Assembly (NCBI GenBank): GCA_001643675.2
Contig: LSRY02000018.1
Coordinates: 186,001 to 250,000, forward strand
Direction: 5' to 3'
Length of the DNA stretch: 64,000 nucleotides
Origin: Monocercomonoides exilis PA203
Taxonomy: Eukaryota; Protista; Preaxostyla
Shown: positions 2,806 to 26,840 of the stretch, piece by piece
Layout of the letters: each line of letters opens with the position of its first letter
Position numbering within the stretch: position 1 is the first letter of the stretch
Program-made: the position numbers and the translations under genes
The notes under the pieces: generated by a model
What the model saw: the letters and a program-made list of their open reading frames with translations, nothing else
Database searches by the model: none
Told to the model about the DNA's origin: nothing

Positions 2806-5490
2806 TTCAGCCGCTGATCTTGCTGCAAATACAAAAATTTCTCAGCGTCTTCTCTCCGACTGCACTTCTTCGCTTGTCAATTCGTTCATGTTAATGGACA
2901 TCCAACAACAATTTTCTTTTTCTCTCTGAACATCTTTATCTCCTTCACTGCAATCCAAAGCTAAACAACTATCTTCTGCTAATCCTGCTGCTCCTGGCTC
3001 ACTTCCTCCACTTTTACTGCTTACCGTAACTTCTTCTCCTTCTCTTTCATTCAACTTTCATCGAGTTCAGTGCCAGACATCATCTTTCGTTGCAACTTGG
3101 AAAGATACAAAGAAATGCTTATTCAAATAATGAATAACAGCTGAAAGTGTGTTACGACGGAAGCGATTCTCCAAAAAGCAAAAAATAATTTGCACGTTAT
3201 CAACAACTGAATCAATTCTGGCCTTTTCATTTGGAAGCTGAAGCATATGAAGTGAAAAGGAAATGGTATAAAAGCAATTTTTGTTTGGAACGAATGATTG
3301 CGGGGATGGACTTCTTCAGATTTCGCAATGCTTTTTGTTCATCTGAACGAGAGGAAAATGAAACGATGAGTGAGAAAAGCAATTTTTTGGAAAACCCATG
3401 CTTGAATGGAAGTTGCAAAAGATTCTTGCACTGATCGGTTCGGTAAGTTGGAATTAGAATTATAAGAGAAACAGATGTTTTTGAAAAGCTTGTTGATACT
3501 ATTGAAGAAAGGCATTTTGAAGAGATGAAGAAGATGATATAAAGCAATGAGCTTTATTTTAATTCGATTAAAAGAGAAAATAGATGGAAAAAAAAATAGA
3601 AGAAATATTTTCATTTGGGCTGATTTTTGGCTCAATGAAAGATAAGCGATGATATAGACTTTAAATGAAAAGAAGATGAAGTCTCATGTATTTTTCTATG
3701 ATATAGAAAATGGAGAAAATTGGAAAATGGAAGGAATTGTAACGAAATTAGAAAAAATCCATCATTATAAGTGATTATGGTTTCAACCGCACTGAAGGTC
3801 AGTATGTGAAGAGGAACAAATGTTGAGGAAAGGAGGGTGAGGGAGGCGTCTTGGAGGAGGGAAATGAAGCAGTTGAGGGCATACTCGATAATGGAGCAAG
3901 TGTTTTGCTTTGTTTAACCACAGCCATCAGCATCGGCTCCATTGTTTGCTCCAATTTTATTCAGTGTAATGTGAGGGAACAAGCTTATGAATTTGGGTTA
4001 ATCCAATATTCCACTTTATCTGTTTCTATTTGATGAATCCGATGAACCGAATAAAAGGAAAGGAAATTTGTTAGCTGTTCAAAGACGAAAAGAAAAAAGA
4101 GAAATAACTATTATTTGTAAATTAGTTTCAATAATTTTGTTTTTTTATCTTCTTTTCTTTTCTTCTTGACAAATTTTCTCTTTGCAATGTTGTATTTTAC
4201 CAATTATGAATTTGCAATTTTGAAGTTTTATTTATTAATTTTAGGTTCATTTTTATTTTCCTTGATCAAAAAATTCTTTTTAATGAAAAAAGGTATGTAT
4301 TTTGCATATTCACATAAAACAAATATATATGACAGAAATAAAAGCTTAATACTAGCAAAAAATCAATTGAACTTTTTGATCAAAGAATACCACAATAGAT
4401 TTAATTTTTTCGATTTTTGATCTTTTTTTATGATATCAAAAAAAATCACCCATATCTTTGAATCAAACATGAAATGTTCAGAAGCAGAAATACTGTGTGT
4501 CAATGTTATCATTTGAATGGAGAAGGAATGAATGTCAGCTGGAATGGATGGAATGAATTGCAATTGAAGGAGTTATCAGAATAATGGATTCAATCAACAT
4601 TGTGTTATTCAAGCGAAAATGGATCGAAAATGTTGAACCAGCTTTCAATGGTATTAAGAAAACATGTTATCAAAGTTGGAATTCCAGAACTTGTTGTTTG
4701 CTGCAAAGAACAAAGTGTTTCAAAAGAAAAAATCATAAAATCAAGATCTGGAAGCTGTTTGCCAAAACGGAAAGTTTGTGAACTTGTTTGTTTCTCTTTA
4801 ATTGTTAATGATTCTTCAAAAAAAAATGGAAAATGTTGTTAACAACACAGATAAAAAAGATGGATTTCAAGCGAAAATTTCAAAGGCAGTTGACAACTGC
4901 ATTGTGAAGCTCTAGCCACAGTTAGAAAGGAGGACTTTAATAAAAGCAAATTTTCATTGCCTTTTTGTGATGGATCAAAGAATTATTTGGCTGTGGAACA
5001 CATCTTTTGACTGTTATTTCAATAGGAATGAATTTTGTGAAAAACAGATATTCAATTTGGATGAACCGACTGTGAGGGGATCAATAAACTCGAAGCTTAT
5101 TGTTTTTGATCCAACAAACTCGAAGCGTGAGTTTTCGCAAAGAACAACCAGAAATGGCAAATTTCACTATAGCTGATGCTGTAATTGCTGATGTGTTCGC
5201 ACTTCCTTCTGTAATTCTGAGGTCAAGATAACGTATTCCTTATGATATGAATCAGCTTTTGTTACAACCTCTGGATATCTGACCGAACGGAAGAGGCTGG
5301 ATGAACAGTGAACAATTGAATTAAAAATTCGAAAAAAATACTCCTTCCTTTTTTTTAACGAACAAAAAAAAGCTCATTCCACTTGAAAAATCTCTCAACT
5401 TTGAAACGTTATCATGAAAGCGAAATTGAAACATTCAACATTGATTTCGGAGAAAATTGATAGAACGCAGTGAGACAGGATTTGCTCCGA

Positions 5491-5527
5491 AATAATGAGT
5501 ATTAATTTAAATTATGGGCGGTTTAAG
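5491..5527. repeat. DIRS inverted terminal repeat core, left copy (3' end of element)
   Basis: aataatgagtattaatttaaattatgggcggtttaag matches the rc of 9701-9737 at 36/37; weaker similarity extends on both sides (cagg..tttgctcc; aacttcgcc). Confidence 0.9.
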
Positions 5528-6120
5528 TGAGAACTTCGCCCTCCCAAATATGACGTGGAAAAAAGGACGAGATGAAAATATAGATAATAACATGTTAAAT
5601 AATAAATAGAATATAATGAATTGTCCGCATTTCTTCACCGCCGACTTCGCCTTTTCGCCTTGGTCACGAAGACCAGAGGGCAGGGGACATAGCCCCTCGG
5701 AGCTGTCTCCTGCAGTCCGTGCAAGGATCCGGAGAGGCGAGTGTTCCAAAACGGAGCAGAAAGAAAAACCACTCTCGCTTTCGCGAGGCGTGGAAAAGAA
5801 AACTGCGTGCCCTTTGCTCTGCCCCCCGCTCTTCTGCTGCAGTGGCAGAGCAAGTCCGCTCACCACACGCTGTGTGGACTAGTCTGACTCTTCTCTTTGC
5901 ACTTTCTTGCCATGAATTAAAGGAGTAAGGTTCTTCTTCACGGTTTCTCTTCCTTTCCTGTTGGTCAATACAGGTTATGGGTGCCTTCGATATTTCTGGA
6001 CGGTTTCTCTCTTTCTATCTCCTCTTCTATCTCGCCACTTTTTTCTCGTCATATTCTTCCCAACATGTTTCTCTCTTATTCTCGCACCCAGACGCTCTGA
6101 GTCTCTCCATCCGCATTAAT

Positions 6121-6217
6121 ATTATTTCGGAGCAAATCCTGTCTCACTGCGTTCTATCAATTCGCAATAGAGCGTATCTACGAACGCAAGGAGCAGGTTT
6201 GCTCCTCAATAATGAGT
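6121..6217. repeat. Internal complementary region (ICR) of the DIRS element
   Basis: 6121-6162 is the exact rc of 5455-5496 (42/42). 6158-6217 is the rc of 9728-9787 (59/60). The two halves overlap at CAATT (6158-6162). Confidence 0.93.
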
Positions 6218-6849
6218 CTTGAATGCACTTTTCCATATATTTACTTTGATTAAATAATATTTTTATTTATTAATTTACTTATTAGTATTGATCTTAAACC
6301 CTCTTGCCTAGCACGTCATCGTGCGGCGGATGTTTAGAGAGCATGCGGATGATGGTGCGGTTCCTGTCTCTACTCCCTTCCTTTCTTTGTGTGTTTCCGA
6401 GGCGTAATCGACCGGGAATTCGTTTCCCTTGCGTTATTTATCATCCAACCTAGATATCTGACACCCTGCTTCCTCCGGTCTGTGCGCATATTCCTCTCTG
6501 TGAGGCAGTGTGTTTGCTTCCATTCAGCTCTCTTCTGCTGCTGGGAATTATGAGGGGTGATCTCAAAAGCTAGGGTGGTCGGGATGAGGCGTTCTGTGAC
6601 AAAGTTGCTTTCCTTTGCTTTCTCTCTTCTCTAAGCTATAAGTCTCGTTTCTTTGTCCGCTTTCTCCATCCTCATATCTTCTTCACCTCCAGCTTCTGAT
6701 ATCATTTCTGTGCACTCTTTCATCTCTAAATTCATTTTCTCGATGATCATTTCCTTTCTTTCTTGAAACTTCTCCGACTTTTCCACTTCTCCCGTTTGGG
6801 GATCAGGACTTTCAATTGTCTCCAGGATTTATTTCGTATCTTGAACCGG

Positions 6850-7700
6850 AAAACCGTAAAGTATTCCTGTTCCACTCTTGAACCTGGTCCACATCTCGTG
6901 TGTGCATTAACTGCTTTCCAAACCGAACCTTTTCTTCTTGATATGTGAATAATAACTTTAAGTCTAATCGAGAATGTGGTCAAAGTATCGTGTATATCAC
7001 ACTCTCTCTTTGAATAACTTCTAATTCTTCTTTAATTCTCTTTATCTTTGCAGGTTAACCTTCTTTGATATCAAACCATACATATTTATCTTAAAATGAA
7101 GTCCTGGATATATTAAGCCAATGTTGGAGCGTCTATACTGCATCGATGAGTGCATTTGAATGTTTGTTAATATCGATTTTAGTAATTATCCTATCTGTTA
7201 TCTATATCTGCACTTCTAATAATACTGTATTCTCTTTCAAAATAGATTCCTTCCTTCTCAATCTCTCCAGCTCAGCAAGCTCTAAAGTAACAAAATTACA
7301 GTGAGGATGAGGGCTCTCCTCTGAAGTGCTTGCGTGTCTGTTGAGTTATATGTGGTGTCTTCCCATTTAGTAATAACTGCAAAATCTCACACTGGTTAAC
7401 ATCATTTGCAGTTTCTCGACTTCTATCCTTCGTAAGTTTTTGAAAATATATCTATATCTTTCACATCACTTGTCTGATGAATCATTCCACTTGAAAGATT
7501 CGTAGTCGATAGGTTATCAATAAATCTTGCCAAGATTCACCTGGCATCGTTCTCGATGAGGTGTATGTTTCATCTGTTCATTCTCATCCAAAAATTGTTT
7601 AAATTTTCTTAGCTATCTCCACGTATCCGTTTTGTTCTTTTGATTAGTCAATATAGCTGCTGATATATCCTCTACTCCTACGTCTTCTCCCCATGTTTGA
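6850..7700 (-). pseudogene. Degenerate DIRS tyrosine recombinase
   Basis: Minus-strand remnants: RRALILTVI/TLELAELER (box A-like, ~7265-7320, frameshifted) and TTFSIRLKVIIH...VNAHTRCGPGSRVEQEYF (HSxR-like and H/W...Y boxes, ~6860-6983); many stops. Confidence 0.65.
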
Positions 7701-7844
7701 AAAAGTTTCCTTCTTGTATATTTACTTCTCCAGTCAAACACTAATTATTTTTCATGGGGGTGAATTCAAGTCATCATTTCTCATCTCGAAACGGTCAATC
7801 AGATGTTTCTTAATAATAGACTAGCACTGTCTGTTCTTCTGGCA

Positions 7845-7906
7845 TCTCTCTCTCTCTTTCTCTCTTTCTCTCTTTCTCTCTTTCTCTCTCTCTATCTTTC
7901 TCTCTC
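7845..7906. repeat. (CT)n/(CTTT) microsatellite inside the DIRS element
   Basis: Direct reading. Confidence 0.85.
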
Positions 7907-7980
7907 TTCAGAGAGGATAGTCTCCAAATAATTCTTCAGGGCACCGGAGCAATCGTGTCTGTAATATAATCTAGTCTTCT

Positions 7981-8250
7981 CGGTTCGAATATTTGAAATG
8001 TCTCTACAACTTTTTCCACTCTCACTGCATTGTCCGGTTTCTTCAAAGTCCGGCTGAGTGCATCTATCGGCATTTTCGCTGAGATATGTTGAGTCTTCTT
8101 CAATTTTCATCACACCGCACTATGCGGCTTATTTCTGTATCCGTCTCTCGCGGTCTCTAGCGGTCTCATGCTCTGTCTTTTCCTCGAGTTTTTTCGCGGA
8201 TTCACTTCTTCAATATTCTCGTGAAATTTCGCCGTTACTATATCTACACA
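7981..8250 (-). pseudogene. Degenerate RNase H C-terminus of DIRS pol
   Basis: Minus frame from 8088 reads HISAKMPIDALSRTLKKPDNAV, with DALSR at 8050-8064; resembles the HIPGxxNxxADALSR end of DIRS/Ty3 RNase H. Confidence 0.55.
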
Positions 8251-8904
8251 TGACTCGCGAAAATGCACTGTTCCTTATCTAATTATCGATTCGCAATCTC
8301 TCTCAATTACTTTCTCTATCCTTCTCTCACAGCAAACTCAGCTTTTTCTTCCTTCAAACCCTTTCGATCAAAAGCAATATGTCACTCCACTATAACCTCG
8401 CGACAATACACAGCAATCTTTTATCTCTCCGTCCCGTTATATTTCGCGGTTTCACTTTTGTAATTATTTCTCTTATATTGAATCGTATCCTATCTTATTA
8501 AAATTGATAATATTTCACTCTTTCAGTTTTGATATGTTGTTGTAATGCAGCTTGTCAGTATTCACTTTGCGAAGGCCTCTCTAATTACTGAGTTTTCTAT
8601 CTTAATTGTCATCTCGCTGTTAAGTGCGTCTATCTCTGCTATCTCCACTCTCATGATCTCAAGACTTAACGTTGTCTTGTTCCTCGTAAATATCTCTTTA
8701 TTGTGTGCAGCTTCATTAAAATTATCTAAATCTTTATTGTTATTAAATTATCCTTCTATTAATATCTCGCTGTAATATGTGTATCGATTCTCACAAATAT
8801 CCTTGTTATGTGTTTATGTGTATATTTTGTTGCTGCATTTATCCGTATCTCAAAAAGCTGCTCATCTCTTATTCTTAATAATCTTTTCTTCGTTGTAAGT
8901 TGAT

Positions 8905-9012
8905 TCTCTCTTCTCTCTCTGTCTCGCGGCTATGCGCGGCTCTCTCTTCTCTCTCTGTCTCGCGGCTATGCGCGGCTCTCTCTTCTCTTTCTGTCTCGCG
9001 GCTATGCGAGGC
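8905..9012. repeat. 36-bp tandem repeat x3 in the putative gag region
   Basis: Unit tctctcttctctctctgtctcgcggctatgcgcggc at 8905, 8941 and 8977 (third copy has 2 mismatches). Confidence 0.9.
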
Positions 9013-9700
9013 TCTTCTACCTTGAAAATTATATCAATATTCTATTGTTTCTCGTTTGTTTTGTTTAATTTGTATTCCACAGCATAATATGAATAAATTT
9101 TTTCAATATTGTGTATGTATATAATATTATTTTAAAATTTTGATAGGATATTCTTTCTTTATAATAATCTCTCTGCAATTTGTGGATCTATCTTTTAGAA
9201 TTCTTGTAATATCCAGCGATTTCATTATTTAACTACATCACTCTTCAATTCGCAGTTCCTTTTCCTAATAAATAAACAATATAATGTGTAGTTTTATTCT
9301 TTTTAAAAGCCTATAAAAATGTTATATCTTCATTTTGTTTAAATATCTCTCGATTTTTTGTGGTTTCTGTTTGTTCAATTGTCTCGCTGCACAATGTGGT
9401 TCCAATTCCAATAATTATCTCACAGAATTTTCCAGATTCTGTTCTTGATAAAATCTCTTCACAATGTGCAGCTTGCCGTTCGACATCTTCAGCTGTGCAC
9501 TTTCTTCCATTCCGGATGATGAATTTCATGCTTAAATCCTAGTAAATTCTTCACTAAAATACTCCACTTTGACCAGTGTTTAAATTTGATCTTATTCTCT
9601 TCCATCGCCGTCTCTGTGTTCTATTGAAACAGGTTGTTGCTTCATTTTCATTGCGGACAATTTGGATCAACTTTGAATTTGAGTATTGGCGAAGTTAGAT

Positions 9701-9737
9701 CTTAAACCGTCCATAATTTAAATTAATACTCATTATT
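9701..9737. repeat. DIRS inverted terminal repeat core, right copy (5' end of element)
   Basis: cttaaaccgtccataatttaaattaatactcattatt is the rc of 5491-5527 with 1 mismatch. Confidence 0.9.
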
Positions 9738-11248
9738 GAGGAGCAAACCTGCTCCTTGCGTTCGTAGATTCGCTCTATTGCGAATTGTCAAAGATTAGAA
9801 ATTCGAACATTGAATTCGTAATTTGAGATTTATTCTTTTCTTATTCATTTCAAATAAACAGTACTGATGAAAAACAAAAGGACACAAAAAACCAATCAAC
9901 CATCATATTTCCGTTTTTATGAAGAAACTGGTGAAATGTTCAGACGATTGGAAAGAAACATCTCAAAGAATCGAAATTATCAAAAAAAATTGTTTGATGT
10001 GAATTTTGACAATTGATATTTATTCCTCTCAAAACAAAAAGAGAGTGAGAATAGGAGCAAGTTTTTGAACATTTTTGGAAAAGAAAGGAAAACAAAGTCT
10101 GTTTGTGAACATTTCAAAGTGATAATAAATTCACAGAAACAATAAACAACAATATTTCTTGATTGTTCGCTTTTCTTTTGAAAAAGTCATTGTTCGACAC
10201 TTCAAGATTCATCATAAAATAATAGAAAGTGCGAACGGATTATTTTCAAGATTATGTTCCTTTTTGATTACAAATCTCGATGAAAGTTGAAGATTGATTT
10301 TCTTTCATATGAGATTGCTCAGCAAAAACTCAAAACCAACAATAAATATAAAAGCAAGTCAAATAATTGTTAAAAAAAAATTAAAAATAAAAATAAAAAT
10401 AAAAGCAAAATACAAAGCCACAAATTGATGGCTGAAATAAGATGCAATGCAGTCAAGACTGCAACCCAACAAACACCCATGCGCATCTTCCTTCGTGCTG
10501 CTTCCCCAAAACACGAAAGCCCCATCCCGCAGTTCCTCCGCCTTTGCTGCTCTTTCAGTGTTCGCTCTGGATCCTGCTCCCTTTTCCATCCGTTCCTGCA
10601 CCGCCTCTTCCAGATAATGGGCAGCGAGGAAGCACCGCTCATCGGTGTGCTGCTGTCAGGCATGCTTGGCGTTTCGCCGAGTGCTCCATTTCTTTTTCGC
10701 TGTTTCCAACTGCTTTCGCCACGCCTGCCACCCCCCATCCACTGCCCAAACTGCAAGCCCCACATCCTGCTCAAGTCGGCTGTTCTTCGCTTTTTCTTGC
10801 TGCATGCACCATCCTTGGCAACAGACAACCCGGCAGATTTCGCTGCGCTGTGCATCCTATGCAATGTCTCGCTGCTTCAAATCAATGAATAGGAGAATAC
10901 CTGCCAATAACCAAACACAAATCAACAAACAAAAATTAACAAAAATGAAAAATATTAAAAAACAAAAAATAAAAAAATAAAAAATAAAAATAATAAAGAG
11001 CAGCACAGACAGCAAAAACAGATATCCCTCGTCCTCTCAATCCCACTCCAAAAACACATACAAGACAAGCACACCCCTTGCTGAATATATCCCACACGCA
11101 TACACACACACACGCACACATGCACATCCAAGTCCATCACCCACTGCTGCACTCTTCATCACCAACTCAAATCATGAAACAAGGAATGTCTCCAAAGGAA
11201 TCAATCCCACCCGAAATGCCCATTCCCCCTCCAAAGTTAATGCCAACC

Positions 11249-11367
11249 TCAAGTCGGCAAACGAGGCGAAGGCAACAAAGGCGAAGGCTGCAAAGGTGAC
11301 AACACAAATTTCAGCCTTCCAGTTCCTTGCAACGCCAAAGAGGAAGAGGATGGAGAAGAAGAAGAAA

Positions 11368-11401
<34 letters not shown>

Positions 11402-14400
11402 CGATGATGATGGCTGCGGTTGCGCTGATGAAAATATCGAATCACAGTCAGAAGGAGACGCAACAAACTGAAAATCACAAAAACTCGTCCTGCTCTGCGC
11501 TTCCACTCCACGAATCGCTTCCACACATGGCTCACAACGCAGATGCGTGCTCGCACACTCCCAAGCGCTGCCCACAGGAACAGCTGCTGCTGCACATTCA
11601 CCATCCCCACAACCCCCACAACCACCACAACCACCACAACCACCACAACCACCAGAAGGAGAATGAGCACTGCCATCCGAACTGTCCGCCCCATCCTTCT
11701 CTTCTTCTCCTCCTTCCTCCAATTCCATCATTCTCTTCCTCTTTTCTCTCTTTCCCTTTCCATTTTCCTTTCCCTTCCCTTTTCCCCTCCTCCTCCCCAT
11801 CCCCCTTTCTTTCCTTCTGCTTTCTGCCTTTTCCTCCACAAACTTCAGAATACATCGCACAATATCCTCGTTCATCTCTGCTTCCTCCTCTTCTCCTGCT
11901 CCTTCGGCTCCTTCCTTCTTCCTTTTCTCTTTCTTCCTCTCCTTCTCTTTCTTCCTCTCCTTCTCCTTCCTCTCCTCCTCTTCCTGCACCATGTGCAGCG
12001 GCAGAAACGCTTTTCTCCCTCCTCCTTCTTCTTTCACCCACTCCGCCACATCTTCCTCATACCGCCACCAAAGCTTCCTCAAATACTCTTTCTTCTCCCA
12101 AACCCCTCCCTTCTCCATCATCTCCATCATCTCCATCATCTGCCTCACCAGCTCCCCCTTCAAACATTCCACAACATCCTCCTGCCTCATCTTCATCGGA
12201 TCCTCTTCCTCGTCTTCTTCACGCTGCAAATATTCCAACAGAAATGAAGACGACGAAGACAATAATGCCGGAAACCTCATCAAGCTTGGCTCACCCATTT
12301 CTGAATCACACTGCAAATGCAATAAATCAACAGATGCATGCTCCATCTCCTTCATCTCTTTCATCCTCTTCTCCCCATGCTTCTTTCTTTTATCCCTCTT
12401 TCCGTCTTCTTTACCTTCCTTCTCTTCCTTCTCTTCCTTCTCTTCCTTCTCTTCCTTCTCTTTCTTGTTTTCCTTGCCTTCTTCTCCAGACACTTCACAA
12501 CACCCTTCAACCCCATCCTGATGGCAGCCCACTCTTCCTCTTCCTCCTCCACACACGCTCCTCCTCCTTCTGCGTCTTCTCTCCAAAAAATAGTCCTCCT
12601 CATATGTCAGATTCACCCCATCTCCACCACTTTCTCTCTCTGCCCATGCGCCCTTTCCCTCCTCCTCCTCCTCTTCCTCTTTATCATCATCATCATCTTC
12701 TTCTTCTTCTTCTTCTTCTTCTTCTTCTTCTTCTTCTCCTTCTTCTTCTTCTTCTTCTCCTCCTCCTCCTCCTCCTCCTCCTTCCAGCCCCTCTTCTTGC
12801 ATGTTGTGCAGCATCAGCAGCTGCTTCAGCGGAAGAGGACAGCAGCCCAGTTGCCTGCCTGCCGCTTCCCCATCCATCTCAAACAGCCCATCCTCCACTT
12901 TCTTTCTCTCTTCTCTTCTCCCCTCTTTTCTGTCAAACTTCCTTCCTTTCCTCCCTTCTCCTTTCTTCTTCCTCTCATTTTCACAATCTTCGTCCATCCA
13001 CTTCTCTCTTCTTCCTCCTCTTCTTATGCTGCTGCTGCTACTACTACTACTACCACTTCTGCTGCTGCTGCTCGGTGGAGTCAGCTCAGGCGAACTGCCA
13101 CAAACTGAATGCAACAACTCAGAAGTTTCATCTTTCTCCTTTCTATCCCATATTATCGAAGAAGAAGAAGGCGAAGAAGAAGAAGGGGAAGAAGTTGTTG
13201 CACATGTTGATGATGATGTTTTGATGGCAGGCATAATCTGAATCTCTGCAATCGGCGGATGAACAGCAACAGGAGAGTGAAGATGCCCGCACTTCCCACA
13301 CTCCTCACATTCTCTGCCTCTCCCATCTCCTCCCTCCCCAGCTGCGCCCTCCACAGGCACAAGCACTTCCTTCTCCTCCATCCCTCCCATCGCATCCATT
13401 GCCCCCACCTCCGCCATCTCACACGCCACGCTCCCCATGCTCCCCACACTCGCCAGACACTTCTGCTCAGGCTCTGCAACAAGAACACCTCCCCACCCAC
13501 CACCACCACCACCACAATCCCCCACCCCTCTCCCCCATCCTCCTCCCTCACACCCGCCCCCATATTCACACTCCCCCGAACGATACAGCGCCCCTGCTCC
13601 CACAAACACCGAAGGCGCCACACTCCCAGACACAAACTCAAAGAACTCTCGCGACAGCATCCTCGGCATCCACACAAACCGCTCCCAAACTCCGCTTCTC
13701 CCTTGCCCACCCCTGCCTCCTCCCTGCACAACCCATCTCCCTCCCTCTTCACTCTGCCTCCTCTCCTCCTTTTCCATCTTCCTCTCTGCTGCACGCTCCA
13801 TTGCACGCTCCATTGCACTCTCTCGTGCTCCTCGCCTGCCCTCACATCCTGCAAGAGGACAATTCAGCCGCGTCGAAGACAATGATCCCGAAGAGGAATG
13901 AGTCCGATGCAACTCAACAGCGAAATCAGAAGAGGGAAGAGGAAGAGGAGGAAGAGAAGAAAGATGATGATGAACCAATGCAATCCATATCACTGCTGCC
14001 ATTTCCTTGTCCAAGTCTTTCCCCTCCAACTGCCCCTTCTTCCTCTTCCTCTCTCATTCTCTTCCTTCCTCCCCCTCTTCCTTTTCCCATCTCTTTCTCC
14101 ATCTCTTTCTCTTCCCCATTACCAGCCACATCCACATCCACATCTGCATCTGCATCTGCTCCCCCTTCCCTCCTCCTCGCCAGCTCCTTCTCCCACCGCC
14201 TGTTGTCCGCATAGATTATCACCCCGCCTACCACCAACACTCCAATCAAAAACACAAATATCGTCGCTGTCACCACAACCACATTCTGCTCATCGCTGCT
14301 CAGCCCCCCTCCTTTCCTTCCTTCGCTGCCCTCTCCTCCCCTCACATCCTTATTCCCTGCCCCATCGCCCCCACCTCCCTCTCCCTCTCCCTTTCCCCCT

Positions 14401-14639
14401 CCTTCTCCCCCTCCTCCCCTCCTTCTCCCCTTTCCTCTCCAGGCCTCCTCTCGCATTCCCTCTTCTCATTCAGAAAATACCCCTTCTGGCACCGCACCAC
14501 AACACACTCCCCTGCTCCATCAAACGCATATTCATCTGCCTGCACCCCTACCCCATACACCCCATTCCGCACAAGCCCACTCCCCAGCCTTCTCTCCAAC
14601 ATGCTTTTCACTCCTCTTGCCCCGTCTTCCTCGCCCGCA

Positions 14640-14682
<43 letters not shown>

Positions 14683-17544
14683 ATTCCGCTTCTGATCCTC
14701 CCAATGCTGCTGCTTCCAGAGTCAGCAATCTGCACTTCTCTCCACTCTCCAGCACCTCCCACTCCATCGGCACCTCTGCCAGCGATGCCAGCGACTCAAA
14801 CAGCCCATAGCTCTCTTCCTCTTCCAGCACAGCACTCTCCAGCCGCCGATTCCGCGGAGAATACGCCACCACCCAGTCTGCCGCAAGAACTCCTCCACCA
14901 CCTCCTCCTCCCTCATCCCCATCCTCATCCCCATCCCCAACCCCATTCCCGTCCTCACCCCCTCTCAATCCCTCCGACGGCCACTGCCCAAACACAAGCG
15001 ATTCAGCTGACTTTTCCCACTCCCACCGCTTGATGTCAAACAGCGTGAAGAACACATCCTCGTTCTCCCCAAACCCAGCCGTCTCATTCAGCCTGCTCAA
15101 GTCAAGCGGCTCCTCAATGTGCCCATCAGCACCCATGCCCGCCTGCCCTCTTTTCCTCCCATCCTGCGCGCCACTCACCTTCTTCATCGCCCTCTTCGCC
15201 ACCCTCTTTGCCTCCATCCTCCCCTCTTTCTTTCTCTCTCCAGATTTCTTTCTCTCTCCTTTTTCCTCTCCTTCTTCCTCTTCCTTTTTCTCTTCCTCTT
15301 CCCTCCATCTCTGCAGCGTCTTCGCCGACGTCTCCCACCCTGCATACTTCGCTCCAATCGCCACATTCGCTGTGTTCTCCAGCGTCGTCCTCCCCGCAGA
15401 CGCCACAACCACCTTCCCCAGCCGCTTTTCGTGCACAAACGCTGCAAACACACACGACGCCGACTCCCCAATCCCGTCGGTCAGCACAAGAACACGGTGC
15501 CCATCAAACAGCGATGGTGCTGCCGTTGTTGCGCGCGGCCATGCCGATGACGGATTCGTCGTCTCTGCTCCCCTTGACTCCGCACCGCCGCCCACAAACG
15601 ACAGAAACGGATTCGTCTTGTTCGTGTTGAACGAAAACACCCGCGAAAATGAAACATTCCCACACGCACTCGCCTTTCCTCTGCCAAAATGCCCTTTTTG
15701 CGTTTTTGATCCAAGAGCCACCGTTCAAATCTTCCCCTTCCTCTCCCTCACTCTCTTTCCTCCTTTTCATCTCTCCTTCACTCCCCATCTTTCTATTTGC
15801 CTTCCACTTTGTCTTCCTCTTCGCCTTCGCTTCTGTCTTCGCCTTCCCATTCCCGTCTCCCTTCCCCAAATCACAAGACACTTCAAAGGTGTCTCCAATC
15901 TGCTTCCACTCGTCTGTTCCATGCAGCGTCTTGTACTCCACAAACTCTCCTTCCCCACGCCGCCGCCACAGCTCCGCCGCCCCAAAACTTGCCTCTGTCC
16001 CCAGCATCTGACTCTGCGGGAATACTGGAAACTCGCCCGGGAACAGAAGCGACAGAACTTGCAGCGCAAGCGAAGGGCTGCGCCCAGCTGCCGAGCGGAT
16101 GTCGATGATCAGCGTGCAGTTCAGATTAGTAGGTGGCACAGATCCTTCAGCTAACGACGGAGAAATCGGAGAGGAAGAAGCAGAAAGTGAGGAAATCAGA
16201 GATTGCTGCATAGTCTTCAGCGCATCAGCCGCAGCTGCCCCAAATGACACCTCGTTCTCCGGCTCAAAGTTGAAGATGCGAAACACACCCAGATGCATCG
16301 ACACGCAAAACGACACACTGAAATCGTCTGTCTCTGCAATCTTCACAAATACATCATCCGACAAAGTGGACGATAACGACGACGATGGCGATGATGACAA
16401 CGGGGAAGCATCTGGCATATAGTCAACCCAGCTCGCTGCACTTCTGAGCGGAATTACCAGCTTCAGGGGGCTCTTTCTGGAATTTTCTGCCAGTTTGTAC
16501 AACCGTCGATAGTCCTGAGGGTGATGAAAGCACACAATCGACTTGCTGTCAACTATATTGAGGGAACGAAACGCAAATCGGTCAGCCAATGACATCGATG
16601 CATGAACACGCCCCGTACTTGAACTTTGGATGCGCTTGTCTGGCATCAAATCTGCTCCATTCGTCAGCGAAGCACGAATAGCCTTTGTGTCTGAAGCACT
16701 CCTAACATATGGCTGTTGAAGAATCTTCAGCGCATCTGTTGGTTCAGTGCCTCCAAAAAATGTCAGAGTCTGGGGCTTTGAGAATGTTTCGATCGGACGC
16801 CTGCAAAATGATCGAAGGATTGCTTCGTTCATTCGCAGTAATGGATCACGAATATACAAAAGATGCTCGTTTGCCCATTCCCGAATCCAATCTTCAATTG
16901 GAACAATACAAGTGTCTGTACAATTTTCTCCTTCAATTTCAAATCCAGAAACATAAAATGATTTTAGACTTGAATCATCGTTTTCCTTTTTCATATCTAT
17001 TGCATTTGTAAATACGCTGTCAACCCACAAAGTCCATGTATCAATCTTTCCTTCGTCATCGTGATTGGCCTCTAGCGAAAATGGATAATACCATTCATAA
17101 AGTTCGCTACATCTCATCGAATATCGAGTTGTTCCCTGCGAAAAGCTTTTTATCAATTTTGAAAATTCAACAAATTTCTCGTAAATTTCGCCTTCTTCTT
17201 CTTCTATGCGGTTAAGTTTTTCCTTCAAAATCAAAAAAGCATTAGCATTTTTGCCGTTTTTCACTTCAAAATGATATGACTGAATAGTATTCTCAATAAT
17301 CTGAAGCATTGTGGACTTTAAAACTGAAAAATTACCAAACTTGTTATAAAAATACATATAATTTGAAAATTGATTCACGTTGCAAAATTGAAAATATTTT
17401 AAGCAAACAAAAAAAGAAAAAAAGCACATTTTCATTTCTTAATCGTTGTTCAAAAGTATGAGCCTCTTCGAATGGGGCCATCAGGGTGGGGCACAAAAAA
17501 CATATTTGAATCCAGTTAAGAAGATATATGCATCCCCAAAGCAT
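11249..17544 (-). CDS. S41 peptidase-like type I membrane protein, copy A (frameshifts near 15705, 14420 and 13950)
   Basis: Mirror of 18094-24369; ORFs 15504-17435, 14342-15721, 13926-14456 and 11249-14029 join through small, mostly homopolymer, indels. Confidence 0.6.
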
Positions 17545-17766
17545 TTATATCTCCAAAAACAAGATTTTTAATAAAACTTATGATCTGTAACATAACAAAT
17601 TTATTCCAACAATTATCAAAATTATTTTTGAAAATACAAGACTGTTAACGTAATTAAAAAGAAATAATTTTACGTGTGACCGAAAGAATAGTTGACAATT
17701 CAATGAAGGAGAAAGATCTATTAGTCAATTATCATTTCATTTGTTTTAAAAAGAAATAAATTTTAA

Positions 17767-17871
17767 TACATTTGTATATGTTGGGTTGAATCAAAAATAG
17801 AAACAAAATTTTTATATAATATAAAATATATAATTCATTAATAATATCTAATTAAATAATCATCAGATATT
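17767..17871. promoter_or_regulatory. 105-bp unique AT-rich palindrome spacer within a probable shared bidirectional promoter (17545-18093)
   Basis: Arm complementarity stops at 17766/17872; divergent ATGs at 17544 (-) and 18094 (+). Confidence 0.55.
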
Positions 17872-20800
17872 TTAAAATTTATTTCTTTTTAAAACAAATG
17901 AAATGATAATTGACTAATAGATCTTTCTCCTTCATTGAATTGTCAACTATTCTTTCGGTCACACGTAAAATTATTTCTTTTTAATTACGTTAACAGTCTT
18001 GTATTTTCAAAAATAATTTTGATAATTGTTGGAATAAATTTGTTATGTTACAGATCATAAGTTTTATTAAAAATCTTGTTTTTGGAGATATAAATGCTTT
18101 GGGGATGCATATATCTTCTTAACTGGATTCAAATATGTTTTTTGTGCCCCACCCTGATGGCCCCATTCGAAGAGGCTCATACTTTTGAACAACGATTAAG
18201 AAATGAAAATGTGCTTTTTTTCTTTTTTTGTTTGCTTAAAATATTTTCAATTTTGCAACGTGAATCAATTTTCAAATTATATGTATTTTTATAACAAGTT
18301 TGGTAATTTTTCAGTTTTAAAGTCCACAATGCTTCAGATTATTGAGAATACTATTCAGTCATATCATTTTGAAGTGAAAAACGGCAAAAATGCTAATGCT
18401 TTTTTGATTTTGAAGGAAAAACTTAACCGCATAGAAGAAGAAGAAGGCGAAATTTACGAGAAATTTGTTGAATTTTCAAAATTGATAAAAAGCTTTTCGC
18501 AGGGAACAACTCGATATTCGATGAGATGTAGCGAACTTTATGAATGGTATTATCCATTTTCGCTAGAGGCCAATCACGATGACGAAGGAAAGATTGATAC
18601 ATGGACTTTGTGGGTTGACAGCGTATTTACAAATGCAATAGATATGAAAAAGGAAAACGATGATTCAAGTCTAAAATCATTTTATGTTTCTGGATTTGAA
18701 ATTGAAGGAGAAAATTGTACAGACACTTGTATTGTTCCAATTGAAGATTGGATTCGGGAATGGGCAAACGAGCATCTTTTGTATATTCGTGATCCATTAC
18801 TGCGAATGAACGAAGCAATCCTTCGATCATTTTGCAGGCGTCCGATCGAAACATTCTCAAAGCCCCAGACTCTGACATTTTTTGGAGGCACTGAACCAAC
18901 AGATGCGCTGAAGATTCTTCAACAGCCATATGTTAGGAGTGCTTCAGACACAAAGGCTATTCGTGCTTCGCTGACGAATGGAGCAGATTTGATGCCAGAC
19001 AAGCGCATCCAAAGTTCAAGTACGGGGCGTGTTCATGCATCGATGTCATTGGCTGACCGATTTGCGTTTCGTTCCCTCAATATAGTTGACAGCAAGTCGA
19101 TTGTGTGCTTTCATCACCCTCAGGACTATCGACGGTTGTACAAACTGGCAGAAAATTCCAGAAAGAGCCCCTGAAGCTGGTAATTCCGCTCAGAAGTGCA
19201 GCGAGCTGGGTTGACTATATGCCAGATGCTTCCCCGTTGTCATCATCGCCATCGTCGTCGTTATCGTCCACTTTGTCGGATGATGTATTTGTGAAGATTG
19301 CAGAGACAGACGATTTCAGTGTGTCGTTTTGCGTGTCGATGCATCTGGGTGTGTTTCGCATCTTCAACTTTGAGCCGGAGAACGAGGTGTCATTTGGGGC
19401 AGCTGCGGCTGATGCGCTGAAGACTATGCAGCAATCTCTGATTTCCTCACTTTCTGCTTCTTCCTCTCCGATTTCTCCGTCGTTAGCTGAAGGATCTGTG
19501 CCACCTACTAATCTGAACTGCACGCTGATCATCGACATCCGCTCGGCAGCTGGGCGCAGCCCTTCGCTTGCGCTGCAAGTTCTGTCGCTTCTGTTCCCGG
19601 GCGAGTTTCCAGTATTCCCGCAGAGTCAGATGCTGGGGACAGAGGCAAGTTTTGGGGCGGCGGAGCTGTGGCGGCGGCGTGGGGAAGGAGAGTTTGTGGA
19701 GTACAAGACGCTGCATGGAACAGACGAGTGGAAGCAGATTGGAGACACCTTTGAAGTGTCTTGTGATTTGGGGAAGGGAGACGGGAATGGGAAGGCGAAG
19801 ACAGAAGCGAAGGCGAAGAGGAAGACAAAGTGGAAGGCAAATAGAAAGATGGGGAGTGAAGGAGAGATGAAAAGGAGGAAAGAGAGTGAGGGAGAGGAAG
19901 GGGAAGATTTGAACGGTGGCTCTTGGATCAAAACGCAAAAAGGGCATTTTGGCAGAGGAAAGGCGAGTGCGTGTGGGAATGTTTCATTTTCGCGGGTGTT
20001 TTCGTTCAACACGAACAAGACGAATCCGTTTCTGTCGTTTGTGGGCGGCGGTGCGGAGTCAAGGGGAGCAGAGACGACGAATCCGTCATCGGCATGGCCG
20101 CGCGCAACAACGGCAGCACCATCGCTGTTTGATGGGCACCGTGTTCTTGTGCTGACCGACGGGATTGGGGAGTCGGCGTCGTGTGTGTTTGCAGCGTTTG
20201 TGCACGAAAAGCGGCTGGGGAAGGTGGTTGTGGCGTCTGCGGGGAGGACGACGCTGGAGAACACAGCGAATGTGGCGATTGGAGCGAAGTATGCAGGGTG
20301 GGAGACGTCGGCGAAGACGCTGCAGAGATGGAGGGAAGAGGAAGAGAAAAAGGAAGAGGAAGAAGGAGAGGAAAAAGGAGAGAGAAAGAAATCTGGAGAG
20401 AGAAAGAAAGAGGGGAGGATGGAGGCAAAGAGGGTGGCGAAGAGGGCGATGAAGAAGGTGAGTGGCGCGCAGGATGGGAGGAAAAGAGGGCAGGCGGGCA
20501 TGGGTGCTGATGGGCACATTGAGGAGCCGCTTGACTTGAGCAGGCTGAATGAGACGGCTGGGTTTGGGGAGAACGAGGATGTGTTCTTCACGCTGTTTGA
20601 CATCAAGCGGTGGGAGTGGGAAAAGTCAGCTGAATCGCTTGTGTTTGGGCAGTGGCCGTCGGAGGGATTGAGAGGGGGTGAGGACGGGAATGGGGTTGGG
20701 GATGGGGATGAGGATGGGGATGAGGGAGGAGGAGGTGGTGGAGGAGTTCTTGCGGCAGACTGGGTGGTGGCGTATTCTCCGCGGAATCGGCGGCTGGAGA

Positions 20801-20953
20801 GTGCTGTGCTGGAAGAGGAAGAGAGCTATGGGCTGTTTGAGTCGCTGGCATCGCTGGCAGAGGTGCCGATGGAGTGGGAGGTGCTGGAGAGTGGAGAGAA
20901 GTGCAGATTGCTGACTCTGGAAGCAGCAGCATTGGGAGGATCAGAAGCGGAAT

Positions 20954-20996
<43 letters not shown>

Positions 20997-23900
20997 TGCG
21001 GGCGAGGAAGACGGGGCAAGAGGAGTGAAAAGCATGTTGGAGAGAAGGCTGGGGAGTGGGCTTGTGCGGAATGGGGTGTATGGGGTAGGGGTGCAGGCAG
21101 ATGAATATGCGTTTGATGGAGCAGGGGAGTGTGTTGTGGTGCGGTGCCAGAAGGGGTATTTTCTGAATGAGAAGAGGGAATGCGAGAGGAGGCCTGGAGA
21201 GGAAAGGGGAGAAGGAGGGGGAGGAGGGGGAGAAGGAGGGGGAAAGGGAGAGGGAGAGGGAGGTGGGGGCGATGGGGCAGGGAATAAGGATGTGAGGGGA
21301 GGAGAGGGCAGCGAAGGAAGGAAAGGAGGGGGGCTGAGCAGCGATGAGCAGAATGTGGTTGTGGTGACAGCGACGATATTTGTGTTTTTGATTGGAGTGT
21401 TGGTGGTAGGCGGGGTGATAATCTATGCGGACAACAGGCGGTGGGAGAAGGAGCTGGCGAGGAGGAGGGAAGGGGGAGCAGATGCAGATGCAGATGTGGA
21501 TGTGGATGTGGCTGGTAATGGGGAAGAGAAAGAGATGGAGAAAGAGATGGGAAAAGGAAGAGGGGGAGGAAGGAAGAGAATGAGAGAGGAAGAGGAAGAA
21601 GGGGCAGTTGGAGGGGAAAGACTTGGACAAGGAAATGGCAGCAGTGATATGGATTGCATTGGTTCATCATCATCTTCTTCCTCTTCCTCCTCTTCCTCTT
21701 CCTCTTCTGATTTCGCTGTTGAGTTGCATCGGACTCATTCCTCTTCGGGATCATTGTCTTCGACGCGGCTGAATTGTCCTCTTGCAGGATGTGAGGGCAG
21801 GCGAGGAGCACGAGAGAGTGCAATGGAGCGTGCAATGGAGCGTGCAGCAGAGAGGAAGATGGAAAAGGAGGAGAGGAGGCAGAGTGAAGAGGGAGGGAGA
21901 TGGATTGTGCAGGAAGGAGGCAGGGGTGGGCAAGGGAGAAGCGATGTTTGGGAGCGGTTTGTGTGGATGCCGAGGGTGCTGTCGCGAGAGTTCTTTGAGT
22001 TTGTGTCTGGGAGTGTGGCGCCTTCGGTGTTTGTGGGAGCAGGGGCGCTGTATCGTTCGGGGGAGTGTGAATATGGGGGCGGGTGTGAGGGAGGAGGATG
22101 GGGGAGAGGGGTGGGGGATTGTGGTGGTGGTGGTGGTGGGTGGGGAGGTGTTCTTGTTGCAGAGCCTGAGCAGAAGTGTCTGGCGAGTGTGGGGAGCATG
22201 GGGAGCGTGGCGTGTGAGATGGCGGAGGTGGGGGCAATGGATGCGATGGGAGGGATGGAGGAGAAGGAAGTGCTTGTGCCTGTGGAGGGCACAGCTGGGG
22301 AGGGAGGAGATGGGAGAGGCAGAGAATGTGGGGAGTTTGGGAAGTGCGGGCATCTTCACTCGCCTGTTGCTGTTCATCCGCCGATTGCAGAGATTCAGAT
22401 TATGCCTGCCATCAAAACATCATCATCAACATGTGCAACAACTTCTTCGCCTTCTTCTTCTTCGCCTTCTTCTTCTTCGATAATATGGGATAGAAAGGAG
22501 AAAGATGAAACTTCTGAGTTGTTGCATTCAGTTTGTGGCAGTTCGCCTGAGCTGACTCCACCGAGCAGCAGCAGCAAAAGTGGTAGTAGTAGTAGCAGCA
22601 GCAGCAGCATCAGAAGAGGAGGAAGAAGAGAGAAGTGGATGGACGAAGATTGTGAAAATGAGAGGAAGAAGAAAGGAGAAGGGAGGAAAGGAAGGAAGTT
22701 TGACAGAAAAGAGGGGAGAAGAGAAGAGAGAAAGAAAGTGGAGGATGGGCTGTTTGAGATGGATGGGGATGCGGCAGGCAGGCAACTGGGCTGCTGTCCT
22801 CTTCCGCTGAAGCAGCTGCTGATGCTGCACAACATGCAAGAAGAGGGGCTGGAAGGAGGAGGAGGAGGAGGAGGAGGAGGAGGAGGAGAAGAAGAAGAAG
22901 AAGAAGAAGATGATGATGATAAAGAGGAAGAGGAGGAGGAGGAGAAAGAGGAGGAGGGAAAGGGCGCATGGGCAGAGAGAGAAAGTGGAGGAGATGGGGT
23001 GAATCTGACATATGAGGAGGACTATTTTTTGGAGAGAAGACGCAGAAGGAGGAGGAGCGTATGTGGAGGAGGAAGAGGAAGAGTGGGCTGCCATCAGGAT
23101 GGGGTTGAAGGGTGTTGTGAAGTGTCTGGAGAAGAAGACAAGGAAGAGAAGGAAGAGAAGGAAAACAAGAAAGAGAAGGAAGAGAAGGAAGAGAAGGAAG
23201 AGAAGGAAGACGAGGAAGGCAAAGAAGACGGAAAGAGGGAGAAAAGAAAGAAGCATGGGGAGAAGAGGGTGAAAGGGATGAAGGAGATGGAGCATGCATC
23301 TGTTGATTTATTGCATTTGCAGCGTGGGTCGGAAATGGGTGAGCCAAGCTTGATGAGGTTTCCGTCATTATTGTCTTCGTCGTCTTCATTTCTGTTGGAA
23401 TATTTGCAGCGTGAAGAAGACGAGGAAGGGGATCCGATGAAGATGAGACAGGAGGATGTTGTGGAGTGTTTGAAGGCGGAGCTGGTGAGGCAGATGATGG
23501 AGATGATGGAGATGATGGAGAAGGGAGGGGTTTGGGAGAAGAAAGAGTATTTGAGGAAGCTTTGGTGGCGGTATGAGGAAGATGTGGCGGAGTGGGTGAA
23601 AGAAGAAGGAGGAGGGAGAAAAGCGTTTCTGCCGCTGCACATGGCGCAGGAAGAGGAGGAGAGGAAGGAGAAGGAGAGGAAGAAAGAGAAGGAGAGGAAG
23701 AAAGAGAAAAGGAAGAAGGAAGGAGCCGAAGGAGCAGGAGAAGAGGAGGAAGCAGAGATGAACGAGGATATTGTGCGATGTATTCTGAAGTTTGTGGAGG
23801 AAAAGGCAGAAAGCAGAAGGAAAGAAAGGGGGATGGGGAGGAGGAGGGGAAAAGGGAAGGGGAAGGGAAAGAGAGAAAAGAGGAAGAGAATGATGGAATT

Positions 23901-26840
23901 GGAGGAAGAGGGAGAAGAAGAGAAGGATGGGGTGGACAGTTCGGATGGCGGTGCTCATTCTCCTTCTGGTGGTTGTGGTGGTTGTGGGGGTTGTGGGGAT
24001 GGTGAATGTGCAGCAGCAGCTGTTCCTGTGGGCAGCGCTTGGGAGTGTGCGAGCACGCATCTGCGTTGTGAGCCATGTGTGGAAGCGATTCGTGGAGTGG
24101 AAGCGCAGAGCAGGACGAGTTTTTGTGATTTTCAGTTTGTTGCATCTCCTTCTGACTGTGATTCGATATTTTCATCAGCGCAACCGCAGCCATCATCATC
24201 ATCATCATCATCATCATTTTGTTCTTCTTCTTCTTCTTCTTCTTCTTCTCCATCCTCTTCCTCTTTGGAGTTGCAAGGAACTGGAAGGCTGAAATTTGTG
24301 TTGTCGCCTTTGCAGCCTTCGCCTTTGCTGCCTTCGCCTTTGCTGCCTTCGCCTCGTTTGCCGACTTGAGGTTGGCATTAACTTTGGAGGGGAAATGGGC
24401 ATTTCGGCTGGGATTGATTCCTTTGGAGACATTCCTTGTTTCATTATTTGAGTTGGTGATGAAGAGTGCAGCAGTGGGTGATGGACTTGGATGTGCATGT
24501 GTGCGTGTGTGTGTGTATGCGTGTGGGATATATTCAGCAAGGGGTGTGCTTGTCCTGTGTGTGTTTTTGGAGTGGGATTGAGAGGACGAGGGATATCTGT
24601 TTTTGCCGTCTGTGCTGCTTTTTATCATTTTTATTTTTGTTGTTTTTTCATTTTTTGTTTTTTGATATTTTTCATTTTTGTAAATTTTTGTTTGTGGATT
24701 TGTGTTTGGTTATTGGCAGGTGTTCTCCTATTCATTGATTTGAAGCAGCGAGACATTGCAAAGGATGCACAGCGCAGCGAAATCTGCCGGGTTGTCTGTT
24801 GCCAAGGATGGTGCATGCAGCAAGAAAAAGCGAAGAACAGCCGACTTGAGCAGGATGTGGGGCTTGCAGTTTGGGCAGTGGATGGGGGGTGGCAGGCGTG
24901 GCAAAAGCAGTTGGAAACAGCGAAAAAGAAATGGAGCACTCGGCGAAACGCCAAGCATGCCTGACAGCAGCACACCGATGAGCGGTGCTTCCTCGCTGCC
25001 CATTATCTGGAAGAGGCGGTGCAGGAACGGATGGAAAAGGGAGCAGGATCCAGAGCGAACACTGAAAGAGCAGCAAAGGCGGAGGAACTGCGGGAGGGGG
25101 CTTTCGTGTTTTGGGGAAGCAGCACGAAGGACGATACGCATGGGTGTTTGTTGGGTTGCAGTCTTGACCGCATTGCATCTTATTTCAGCCATCAATTGGT
25201 GCCTGTATTTTGCTTTTATTTTTATTTTTATTTTTATTTTTTTTTTAACAATTATTTGACTTGCTTTTATATTTATTGTTGGTTTTGAGTTTTTGCTGAG
25301 CAGTCTCATATGAAAGAAAATCCATCTTCAACTTTCATCGAGATTTGTAATCAAAAAGGAACATTATCTTGAAAATAATCTGTTCGCACTTTCTATTATT
25401 TTATGATGAATCTTGAAGTGTCGAACAATGACTTTTTAAAAAGAAAAGCGAACAATCAAGAAAAATTGTTGTTTATTGTTTCTGTGAATTTATTATCACT
25501 TTGAAATGTTCACAAACAGACTTTGTTTTCCTTTCTTTTCCAAAAATGTTCAAAAACTTGCTCCTATTCTCACTCTCTTTTTGTTTTGAGAGGAATAAAT
25601 ATCAATTGTCAAAATTCGCAACAACAAACAATTTTTGAAAAATTACGATTCTTTGAGATGTTTCTTTCCAATCGTCTGAACATTTCACCAGTTTCTTCAT
25701 AAAAACGGAAATATGATGGTTGATTGGTTTTTTGTGTCCTTTTGTTTTTCATCAGTACTGTTTATTTGAAATGAATAAGAAAAGAATAAATCTCAAATTA
25801 CGAATTCAATGTTCGAATTTCTAATCTTTGACAATTTTCTCCGAAATCAATGTTGAATGTTTCAATTTCGCTTTCATCATAACCTTTCAAAGTTGAGAGA
25901 TTTTTCAAGTGGAATGAGCTTTTTTTTTGTTGGTTAAAAGAAAGGAAGGAGTATTATTTTCGAATTTTTAATTCAATTGTTCACTGTTCATCCAGCCTCT
26001 TCCGTTCGGTCAGATATCCAGAGGTTGTAACAAAAGCTGATTCATATCATAAGGAATACGTTATCTTGACCTCATAATCACAGAAGGAAGTGCGAACACA
26101 TCAGCAATTACTGCAACAGCCAGAGTGGAATTTGCCATTTATGGTTGTTCTTTGATAAAACTCAGGTTTTTCATTTGTTGGATCAAAAACAATAAGCTTC
26201 GAGTTTATTGATCCCCTCACAGTCGGTTCATCCATATTGAATATCTGTTTTTCACAAAATTCATTCCTTTTGAAATAACAGTCAAAAGATGTGTTCCACA
26301 GCCAAAGAATTCTTTGATCCATCACAAAAAGGCAATGAAAATTTGCTTTTATTAAAGTCCTCCTTTCTAGCTGTGGCTAGAGCTTCACAATGCAGTTGTC
26401 AACTGCCTTTGAAATATTCGCTTGAAATCCATCTTTTTTATCTGTGTTGTTAACAACATTTTCCATTTTTTTTTTTTGAAGAATCATTAACAATAAAAGA
26501 GAAACAAACAAGTTTACAAACTTTCCGTTTTGGCAAACAGCTTCCAGATCTTGATTTTATGATTATTTCTTTTGAGACACTTTGTTCTTTGCAGCAAACA
26601 AGTTCTGGAATTCCAACTTTGATAACATGTTTTCTTAAAACCCTCCAGAGCTGGTTCAGCATTTTTGATCCATTTTCGCTTGAATAACACAATGTTGATT
26701 GAATCCATTATTCTGATAACTCCGTCAATTGCATGTCATTCCATCCATTCCAGCTGACATTCATTCCTTCTCCATTCAAATGATAACATTGACACATTGT
26801 ATTTCTGCTTCTGAACACTTCATAAATGATTCAAAGATAT
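17872..26840. repeat. Right arm of giant inverted repeat (~8.97 kb, uninterrupted)
   Basis: Starts ttaaaatttatttctt (rc of 17751-17766) and ends tgattcaaagatat at 26840 (rc of 4452-4465). Confidence 0.95.
18094..24369 (+). CDS. S41 peptidase-like type I membrane protein, copy B (~2050 aa; one frameshift at ~19170)
   Basis: Signal-peptide-like exon 1 (MLWGCIYLLNWIQICFLC) with GT donor at 18211 and in-frame AG at 18298 or 18322. Motifs LIIDIRSAAGRSPSLALQVLSLLFP and VLVLTDGIGESASCVFAAFV. Cys segment ECVVVRCQKGYFLNEKREC. TM segment VVVVTATIFVFLIGVLVVGGVIIYA. Long E/K/G/S-rich tail. Confidence 0.65.

Follow-up and report, generated by a model that had tools for sequence, protein, structure and literature searches.

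A window of 64,000 nucleotides from Monocercomonoides exilis (contig C12:186001-250000, in an assembly of 82,301,135 bp and 101 contigs) carries on its minus strand, at 5455-9787, a DIRS1-type element in which nearly perfect terminal signals accompany thoroughly wrecked genes. The locus raises the question of how such a copy came to be inserted where it stands. The answer that we reach, with high confidence, is that the copy in the window belongs to a non-autonomous sublineage of a resident DIRS1-type family, a sublineage lacking reverse transcriptase (RT), dead in its recombinase, and most likely moved in trans. The initial annotation had proposed that the element was already coding-dead when it moved and that it was mobilised by enzymes encoded elsewhere, and the genome-wide comparison of copies supports both parts of that proposal.

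The element forms a 4.33-kb insertion. The reverse complement of its 3′ terminus (5455-5496) recurs exactly at 6121-6162 (42/42), and its 5′ terminus (9725-9787) matches 6158-6220 at 61 of 63 positions. These two inner stretches are the halves of an internal complementary region (ICR) and overlap by 5 nt, CAATT; in a predicted RNA fold the ICR and the 3′ terminus pair as the expected long stem. The inverted terminal repeats (ITRs) have a core of 36/37 identical positions within a 78-column match. Matches of 42/42, 59/60 and 36/37 had been reported earlier from the sequence of the window; all were recovered, that of 59/60 being a sub-block of the 61/63 match. Inverted termini whose outer ends both find their complement in an internal region are the arrangement of DIRS1-like elements. 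Long terminal direct repeats were not detected in the element, whose termini are inverted and paired with the ICR, and a search of it against Rfam gave no match. Its features, in window coordinates, are the following.

9688-9787, minus strand: 5′ ITR, of which the outer 63 nt (9725-9787) pair with the ICR.
8066-9687, minus strand: 5′ internal region, homologous to the part preceding the RT in full-length copies; non-coding, the longest open reading frame (ORF) having 75 aa.
8905-9015, minus strand: three 36-nt tandem repeats, a relic of the RDRERRESRA-type repeat in the long frame of the family; stops are present.
8056-8075, minus strand: deletion junction, between 8066 and 8065, with about 1.42 kb lost; it reads ...AAAATGCCGAT/AGATGCACTCAGCC, the stroke marking the junction.
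7890-8065, minus strand: RNase H tail, from DALSR onward, overlapping the start of the retained recombinase frame.
6787-8065, minus strand: tyrosine recombinase (ORF3) remnant, its homologous frame interrupted by 15 stops; there are also 8 frameshift indels and deletions of 141/142 nt and 45 nt.
7836-7912, no strand assigned: TC-rich microsatellite, of variable length among copies, adjoining the shared 141-nt deletion.
6121-6220, minus strand: ICR (circle-junction template), in which 6121-6162 is complementary to the 3′ terminus, and 6158-6220 to the 5′ terminus.
5541-6120, minus strand: 3′ block following the ICR; 5541-5890 is G+C-rich and conserved, and about 5860-6060 is a patch of autonomous type (as in copies L045 and L047), absent from the sibling copy L044.
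5455-5540, minus strand: 3′ ITR, of which the outer 42 nt pair with the ICR.
25832-25836, no strand assigned: empty target site in the other arm of a palindrome, with a single AATTG core; the same core flanks the element at 5455-5459 and 9783-9787.

As had been noted before, no ORF of 80 aa exists on the minus strand between 6218 and 9700: the longest from start to stop has 78 aa (6747-6983), and stretches open from stop to stop extend to 94 aa (6750-7031) and 86 aa. Searched against Pfam, the ten longest open pieces gave no match to RVT_1, RNase H or Phage_integrase, even at E<=1. When the RT-RNase H protein of the family was compared with the window copy by tblastn, only its last ~60 residues matched, from DALSR onward, and the RT core was not found. 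This accounts for the earlier sighting of DALSR without any RT YxDD motif, since only the tail of the RT-RNase H protein survives and the RT itself is physically deleted. In the recombinase remnant, the box A arginine, suspected to be lost, is indeed replaced by glutamate (AGG to GAG, 7280-7282); a conserved tryptophan has become cysteine (6891-6893) and a YY pair reads YF (6861-6866). With the RT deleted, the recombinase wrecked and the catalytic arginine gone, the window copy has no coding capacity for its own transposition.

The deletion is not peculiar to this locus. A DNA search of the genome returned more than 200 matches falling into two groups, of longer and of shorter copies. The set of short copies analyzed comprised the window copy and L031-L044 (n = 15; 3.7-5.7 kb as extracted), which match the query over its full length in the same blocks and keep about 75% of the full-length element. 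All 15 have an identical junction, ...CTCAGCnAAAATGCyGAT/AGAyGCACTCAGCC, and a 300-nt probe centred on it was spanned contiguously at 31 genomic places or more; a 20-nt junction pattern matched short copies only. Full-length copies begin to match exactly at the junction. In those on contigs C2, C56, C26 and C91, the homologue of the upstream side lies about 440 nt before the mid-RT query, from which it follows that about 1.42 kb is missing from the short copies. Every short copy retains of the RT-RNase H protein only the same ~60 terminal residues. The simplest reading is that of one deletion event, followed by amplification. The recovery of an intact RT-recombinase frame by polishing or by splicing, which would have overturned the initial proposal, is excluded by the deletion of the RT with the same junction throughout the set.

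To follow the decay of the recombinase, its region was aligned in 21 copies to the intact frame of L047. Against this frame, the window copy shows 8 frameshift indels and 15 stops. Copy L044 (contig C35) is 94% identical to the window copy, has unrelated flanks, and shares with it 14 of the 15 stops, the private one being at codon 265. At least six of the eight frameshift indels are common to both copies outright, and a seventh is off by one base in its placement. The change of the box A arginine to glutamate is likewise common to the pair and present in 11 of 13 older short copies. Ten of the window copy's stops are also found in lineages further removed. Of the 13 older short copies, 12-13 carry the deletions at reference positions 452 and 1361 and the 141-nt deletion, and 12 carry the stop pair at codons 132/133. 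Several copies at different loci, with unrelated flanks, thus carry the same disabling lesions, which could have proved private to the window copy. Copies L034, L035, L036 and L040 lie on four contigs, have unrelated flanks, are 94-98% identical and all carry the lesions; they represent a burst of dead copies and point to continued activity.

The insertion site sets a limit on the time available for decay. The window contains a large palindrome, with arms at about 4452-17774 and 17864-26840 and an 89-nt spacer. The left arm holds the 4.33-kb insertion and the right arm lacks it. The empty site there (25832-25836) reads ...GAAAATTG/TCAAAG.... The insertion is most simply younger than the palindrome, as had been supposed. 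AATTG occurs once at the empty site, once at each end of the filled site and once at the ICR junction; other family copies have only AA to AATT at their boundaries. Integration made no conventional target-site duplication and used a short core common to the circle junction and the target. In the flanking arms, 63 substitutions were counted over 1992 bases (3.2%), which leaves room for only about 1.6% of change since insertion, far too little for the damage seen. This divergence and the sharing of lesions among unrelated loci together indicate that the window copy was coding-dead when inserted, and bear out the earlier argument that the insertion is too recent for decay in place. Identity between termini and ICR was rejected as an insertion clock, these segments being 91-97% alike between copies anyway. 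The inner arms of the palindrome are 99-100% identical and the outer arms 93-98%. That the outer arms have diverged, and that the 4.3-kb insertion stands on one side only, speaks against a fold-back artefact of the assembly.

Copies that could supply the missing enzymes appear to be present in the same genome. The longer copies match RVT_1, RT_RNaseH and Phage_integrase in Pfam, and the family thus combines RT/RNase H with a tyrosine recombinase, not a DDE integrase, as do elements of the DIRS order. More than 100 genomic places match the RT-RNase H protein, and both this match and that of the recombinase are free of stops in at least four copies, on contigs C1 (two), C7 and C20. These are candidate helpers, none of which is singled out. 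The recombinase frame is open across the RT gene, in frames of 1324-1482 aa (1376 aa in the predicted protein P0002), and two frames are open over the RT in L046 and L047; extensive overlap of the recombinase and pol frames is a further DIRS1-like character. The reading of an 823-aa frame of L047 as a chimera was given up when the recombinase frame proved to overlap the RT. In the RT region of L045-L050, several frames on both strands are open over 130-390 aa, one of them being the recombinase frame; the antisense ones may be compositional. A methyltransferase gave no match in the partial ORFs scanned with general Pfam, as distinct from a dedicated DIRS methyltransferase profile, and the RT-RNase H frame ends about 470 nt after DALSR.

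The short copies have kept their cis-acting parts selectively. When seven short lineages are compared, they are most alike at the 5′ terminus (identity 0.90), in the ICR (0.89) and over the last 430 nt (0.82-0.88); in the recombinase remnant the identity is 0.68-0.78. Compared with autonomous copies, the window copy has an identity of 0.41-0.73 in the coding remnant and of 0.78-0.93 from the ICR to the 3′ end (88-91% to several copies, 82-85% to others), where it is as close to the autonomous copies as these are among themselves. Its 5′ terminal 63 nt are 94-97% identical to the ICRs of four of five autonomous copies (88% for L050), and its own ICR is 93-98% identical to theirs. By these comparisons, autonomous partners with matching cis signals, which the earlier proposal of mobilisation in trans had called for, appear to exist in this genome. 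The G+C-rich block at 5541-5890 has an identity of 0.82-0.89 among short and autonomous copies alike and no Rfam match; it may act in cis, in priming or in transcription.

Exchange of segments between lineages is also apparent. The last 710 nt of the window copy are 91% identical to the autonomous L045 and 85% to the sibling L044. The window copy is here closer to L045 because a patch of about 200 nt (about 5860-6060) is of autonomous type, being 82-98% identical to L045/L047 and 48-78% to L044; we take this patch as a sign of exchange. Copies L031 and L032 have a short-type 5′ part with the junction, an autonomous-like 3′ part (88-90% identical) and a nearly intact recombinase. The RT-bearing copy L014 (C33:911200-916753) has most of the same indels, the 132/133 stop pair and the arginine-to-glutamate change, and L018 (C56:190047-195546), RT-bearing as well, has several of the same indels and neither the stop pair nor the change. 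Both have an RT part that resembles autonomous copies at 84-88% and a 3′ part, of short-element type, that does so at about 70%, and they look recombinant. A 22-nt motif across the stop pair was found at 28 places, about 11 of them adjoining RT matches. Dead recombinase halves on RT-bearing copies imply that recombinase death is not confined to the RT-less lineage. Judged from these identities, the family is mosaic by recombination. Tentatively, and with some doubt, it could be pictured as a layered parasitic community of autonomous copies, RT-bearing copies with a dead recombinase, RT-less copies whose recombinase is nearly intact, and fully dead copies that also lack the RT. Dead lineages would then persist over ~25-30% divergence by repeatedly swapping their cis-acting 3′ modules with those of current autonomous copies through template-switch recombination, thereby tracking their helper.

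We propose the following course of events. In a single event, an ancestor would have lost ~1.42 kb, comprising the RT and almost the whole of RNase H; frameshifts, stops and the loss of the box A arginine would, perhaps earlier and perhaps later, have put its recombinase gene out of action as well. The lineage would have retained the parts required in cis, that is, both termini, the ICR and the conserved 3′ block. The short element would be transcribed and its RNA reverse-transcribed by RT/RNase H from full-length copies; the ICR would splint the cDNA ends into a circle; and a helper recombinase would integrate this circle in trans at a short A/T core, here AATTG. Recombination among co-replicating elements would shuffle segments between short and full-length copies. 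In the DIRS-1 model, the ICR is essential, and a truncated construct is copied by RT acting in trans (PMC7192593). For the M. exilis lineage, an RNA route, a supply of enzymes in trans and this mechanism of recombination are most likely.

Other histories have to be weighed against this one. Dead copies might have been mobilised as DNA, excised and reintegrated in the manner of Cryptons by a recombinase acting in trans, with no reverse transcription. Recombinase-competent copies are present, and a precise empty site with a single AATTG is also expected from recombinase-mediated excision. We nevertheless consider this route unlikely: the copy number has risen to at least 31, an amplification that cut-and-paste does not bring about; the ICR, needed only for rebuilding ends from cDNA (PMC7192593), ranks with the best conserved segments; and the mosaic structure fits template switching. 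A further proposal concerns the origin of the short form, which could be a reverse-transcribed, spliced subgenomic RNA joining an upstream ATG to the recombinase frame. There is indeed an ATG (MKIEEDS...) upstream of the junction, at a distance of 48 nt, the deletion preserves the frame of ORF3, and full-length copies have AG at the right boundary. Such an origin is highly unlikely, however, since the 9-11 nt that precede the junction (AAAATGCYGAT) are confined to short copies, even with up to 3 mismatches allowed, and do not match the left boundary rebuilt from two overlapping protein frames, and the copies of the junction look like the outcome of a single event rather than of recurrent splicing. 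Hardly any credence can be given to the idea that a once-autonomous copy lost its RT and gained its stops in place after insertion. Many family copies have individually decayed, but the window copy shares its junction and nearly all its lesions with copies at unrelated loci, has one private stop only, and can have been in place no longer than the 3.2% arm divergence allows.

Some points weigh against the history of a dead lineage moved in trans. The assembly is nanopore-based (PMC8767320), and errors in it were considered as the cause of the wrecked frames. This explanation was rejected, as the stops are substitutions and the indels, mostly outside homopolymers, follow the phylogeny. The dead short copies L038 and L039 (C69:557971-563309 and 533897-539238) lie 20 kb apart in inverted orientation, with unrelated flanks, and differ by 7 substitutions; their near-identity could reflect gene conversion instead of fresh insertion. 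Some of the shared lesions may also predate the RT deletion or have spread by recombination.

The M. exilis family resembles DIRS-1 of Dictyostelium discoideum in having ITRs and an ICR complementary to both outer ends. As in DIRS-1, the frames for its RT/RNase H and its tyrosine recombinase overlap extensively, and it makes no conventional target-site duplication, sharing a short core with the target (PMC7192593, PMC5633606). It differs in its short ITRs (~60-100 nt), in the ~580-nt block between the ICR and the 3′ ITR, and in its host, an oxymonad; the window copy differs further in having no RT. The trDIRS-1 construct of Malicki et al. (2020), a DIRS element missing part of ORF2/ORF3, is similar in being reverse-transcribed in trans by endogenous RT (PMC7192593). 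It is a laboratory construct, for which full retrotransposition was not shown, whereas the evidence from M. exilis is natural and comes from the history of copies.

Non-autonomous retroelements with a tyrosine recombinase are already known, and the M. exilis lineage is a well-supported further case. TOC1 of Chlamydomonas has been described as a non-autonomous DIRS retrotransposon (PMC9940879). SIRE of Trypanosoma cruzi is a truncated derivative of VIPER, ~0.43 kb long and corresponding to VIPER's A2/B2 split repeats (PMC6681497). Like the short lineage, both are multi-copy, non-coding derivatives presumed to depend on autonomous relatives (PMC9940879, PMC6681497). Neither is of the ITR/ICR type, and the short lineage differs from both in keeping ~75% of the full length, with a single deletion junction and shared lesions.

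A comparison with elements bearing long terminal repeats (LTRs) is instructive as well. Elements of the LARD, BARE-2 and Dasheng type are large LTR derivatives in which coding regions are decayed or missing; their conserved ends recur in an autonomous partner, by which they are mobilised in trans. They have LTRs, a primer binding site (PBS) and polypurine tract (PPT), and rely on a DDE integrase. TOC1, for its part, has split direct repeats. The M. exilis lineage regenerates its ends through ITRs and ICR and integrates by recombinase, and is an analogue, not a member, of the LTR-derived groups. The earlier comparison with TRIM and LARD elements stands in its second half only: a deletion derivative keeping ~75% of the full length is of the LARD or BARE-2 kind and not of the TRIM kind, and it is a member of neither, as its termini are inverted and complementary to an ICR and long terminal direct repeats were not found.

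In the literature, a search for papers joining Monocercomonoides and DIRS found none. A 2011 survey considered it uncertain whether DIRS1-like elements occur in excavates (PMC3266345), and most repeats were left unclassified in the M. exilis genome paper (PMC8767320). The copies described here document an abundant, partly intact DIRS1-type family in a metamonad. They also offer a clean natural case suggesting that DIRS1-type elements can be parasitised, the termini, the ICR and the 3′ block probably sufficing for copying by a helper RT and recombinase, in agreement with the action in trans on the truncated DIRS-1 construct. The minimal requirements in cis are likely to be about the outer 100 nt at the 5′ end and about 700 nt from the ICR to the 3′ end.

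The family also has a bearing on genome annotation, since several M. exilis gene models (MONOS_*) are frames of DIRS elements. All protein matches of the family are MONOS_* models of M. exilis; dozens of annotated "uncharacterized proteins" (P0001-P0034, MONOS_*) correspond to its frames, and some models join different DIRS frames via predicted introns. Finally, the 36-nt repeat seen at 8905-9015 of the window has grown into long tandem arrays in other copies (C29:288523-289222 and C48:68092-73280), that on C48 extending over several kb.

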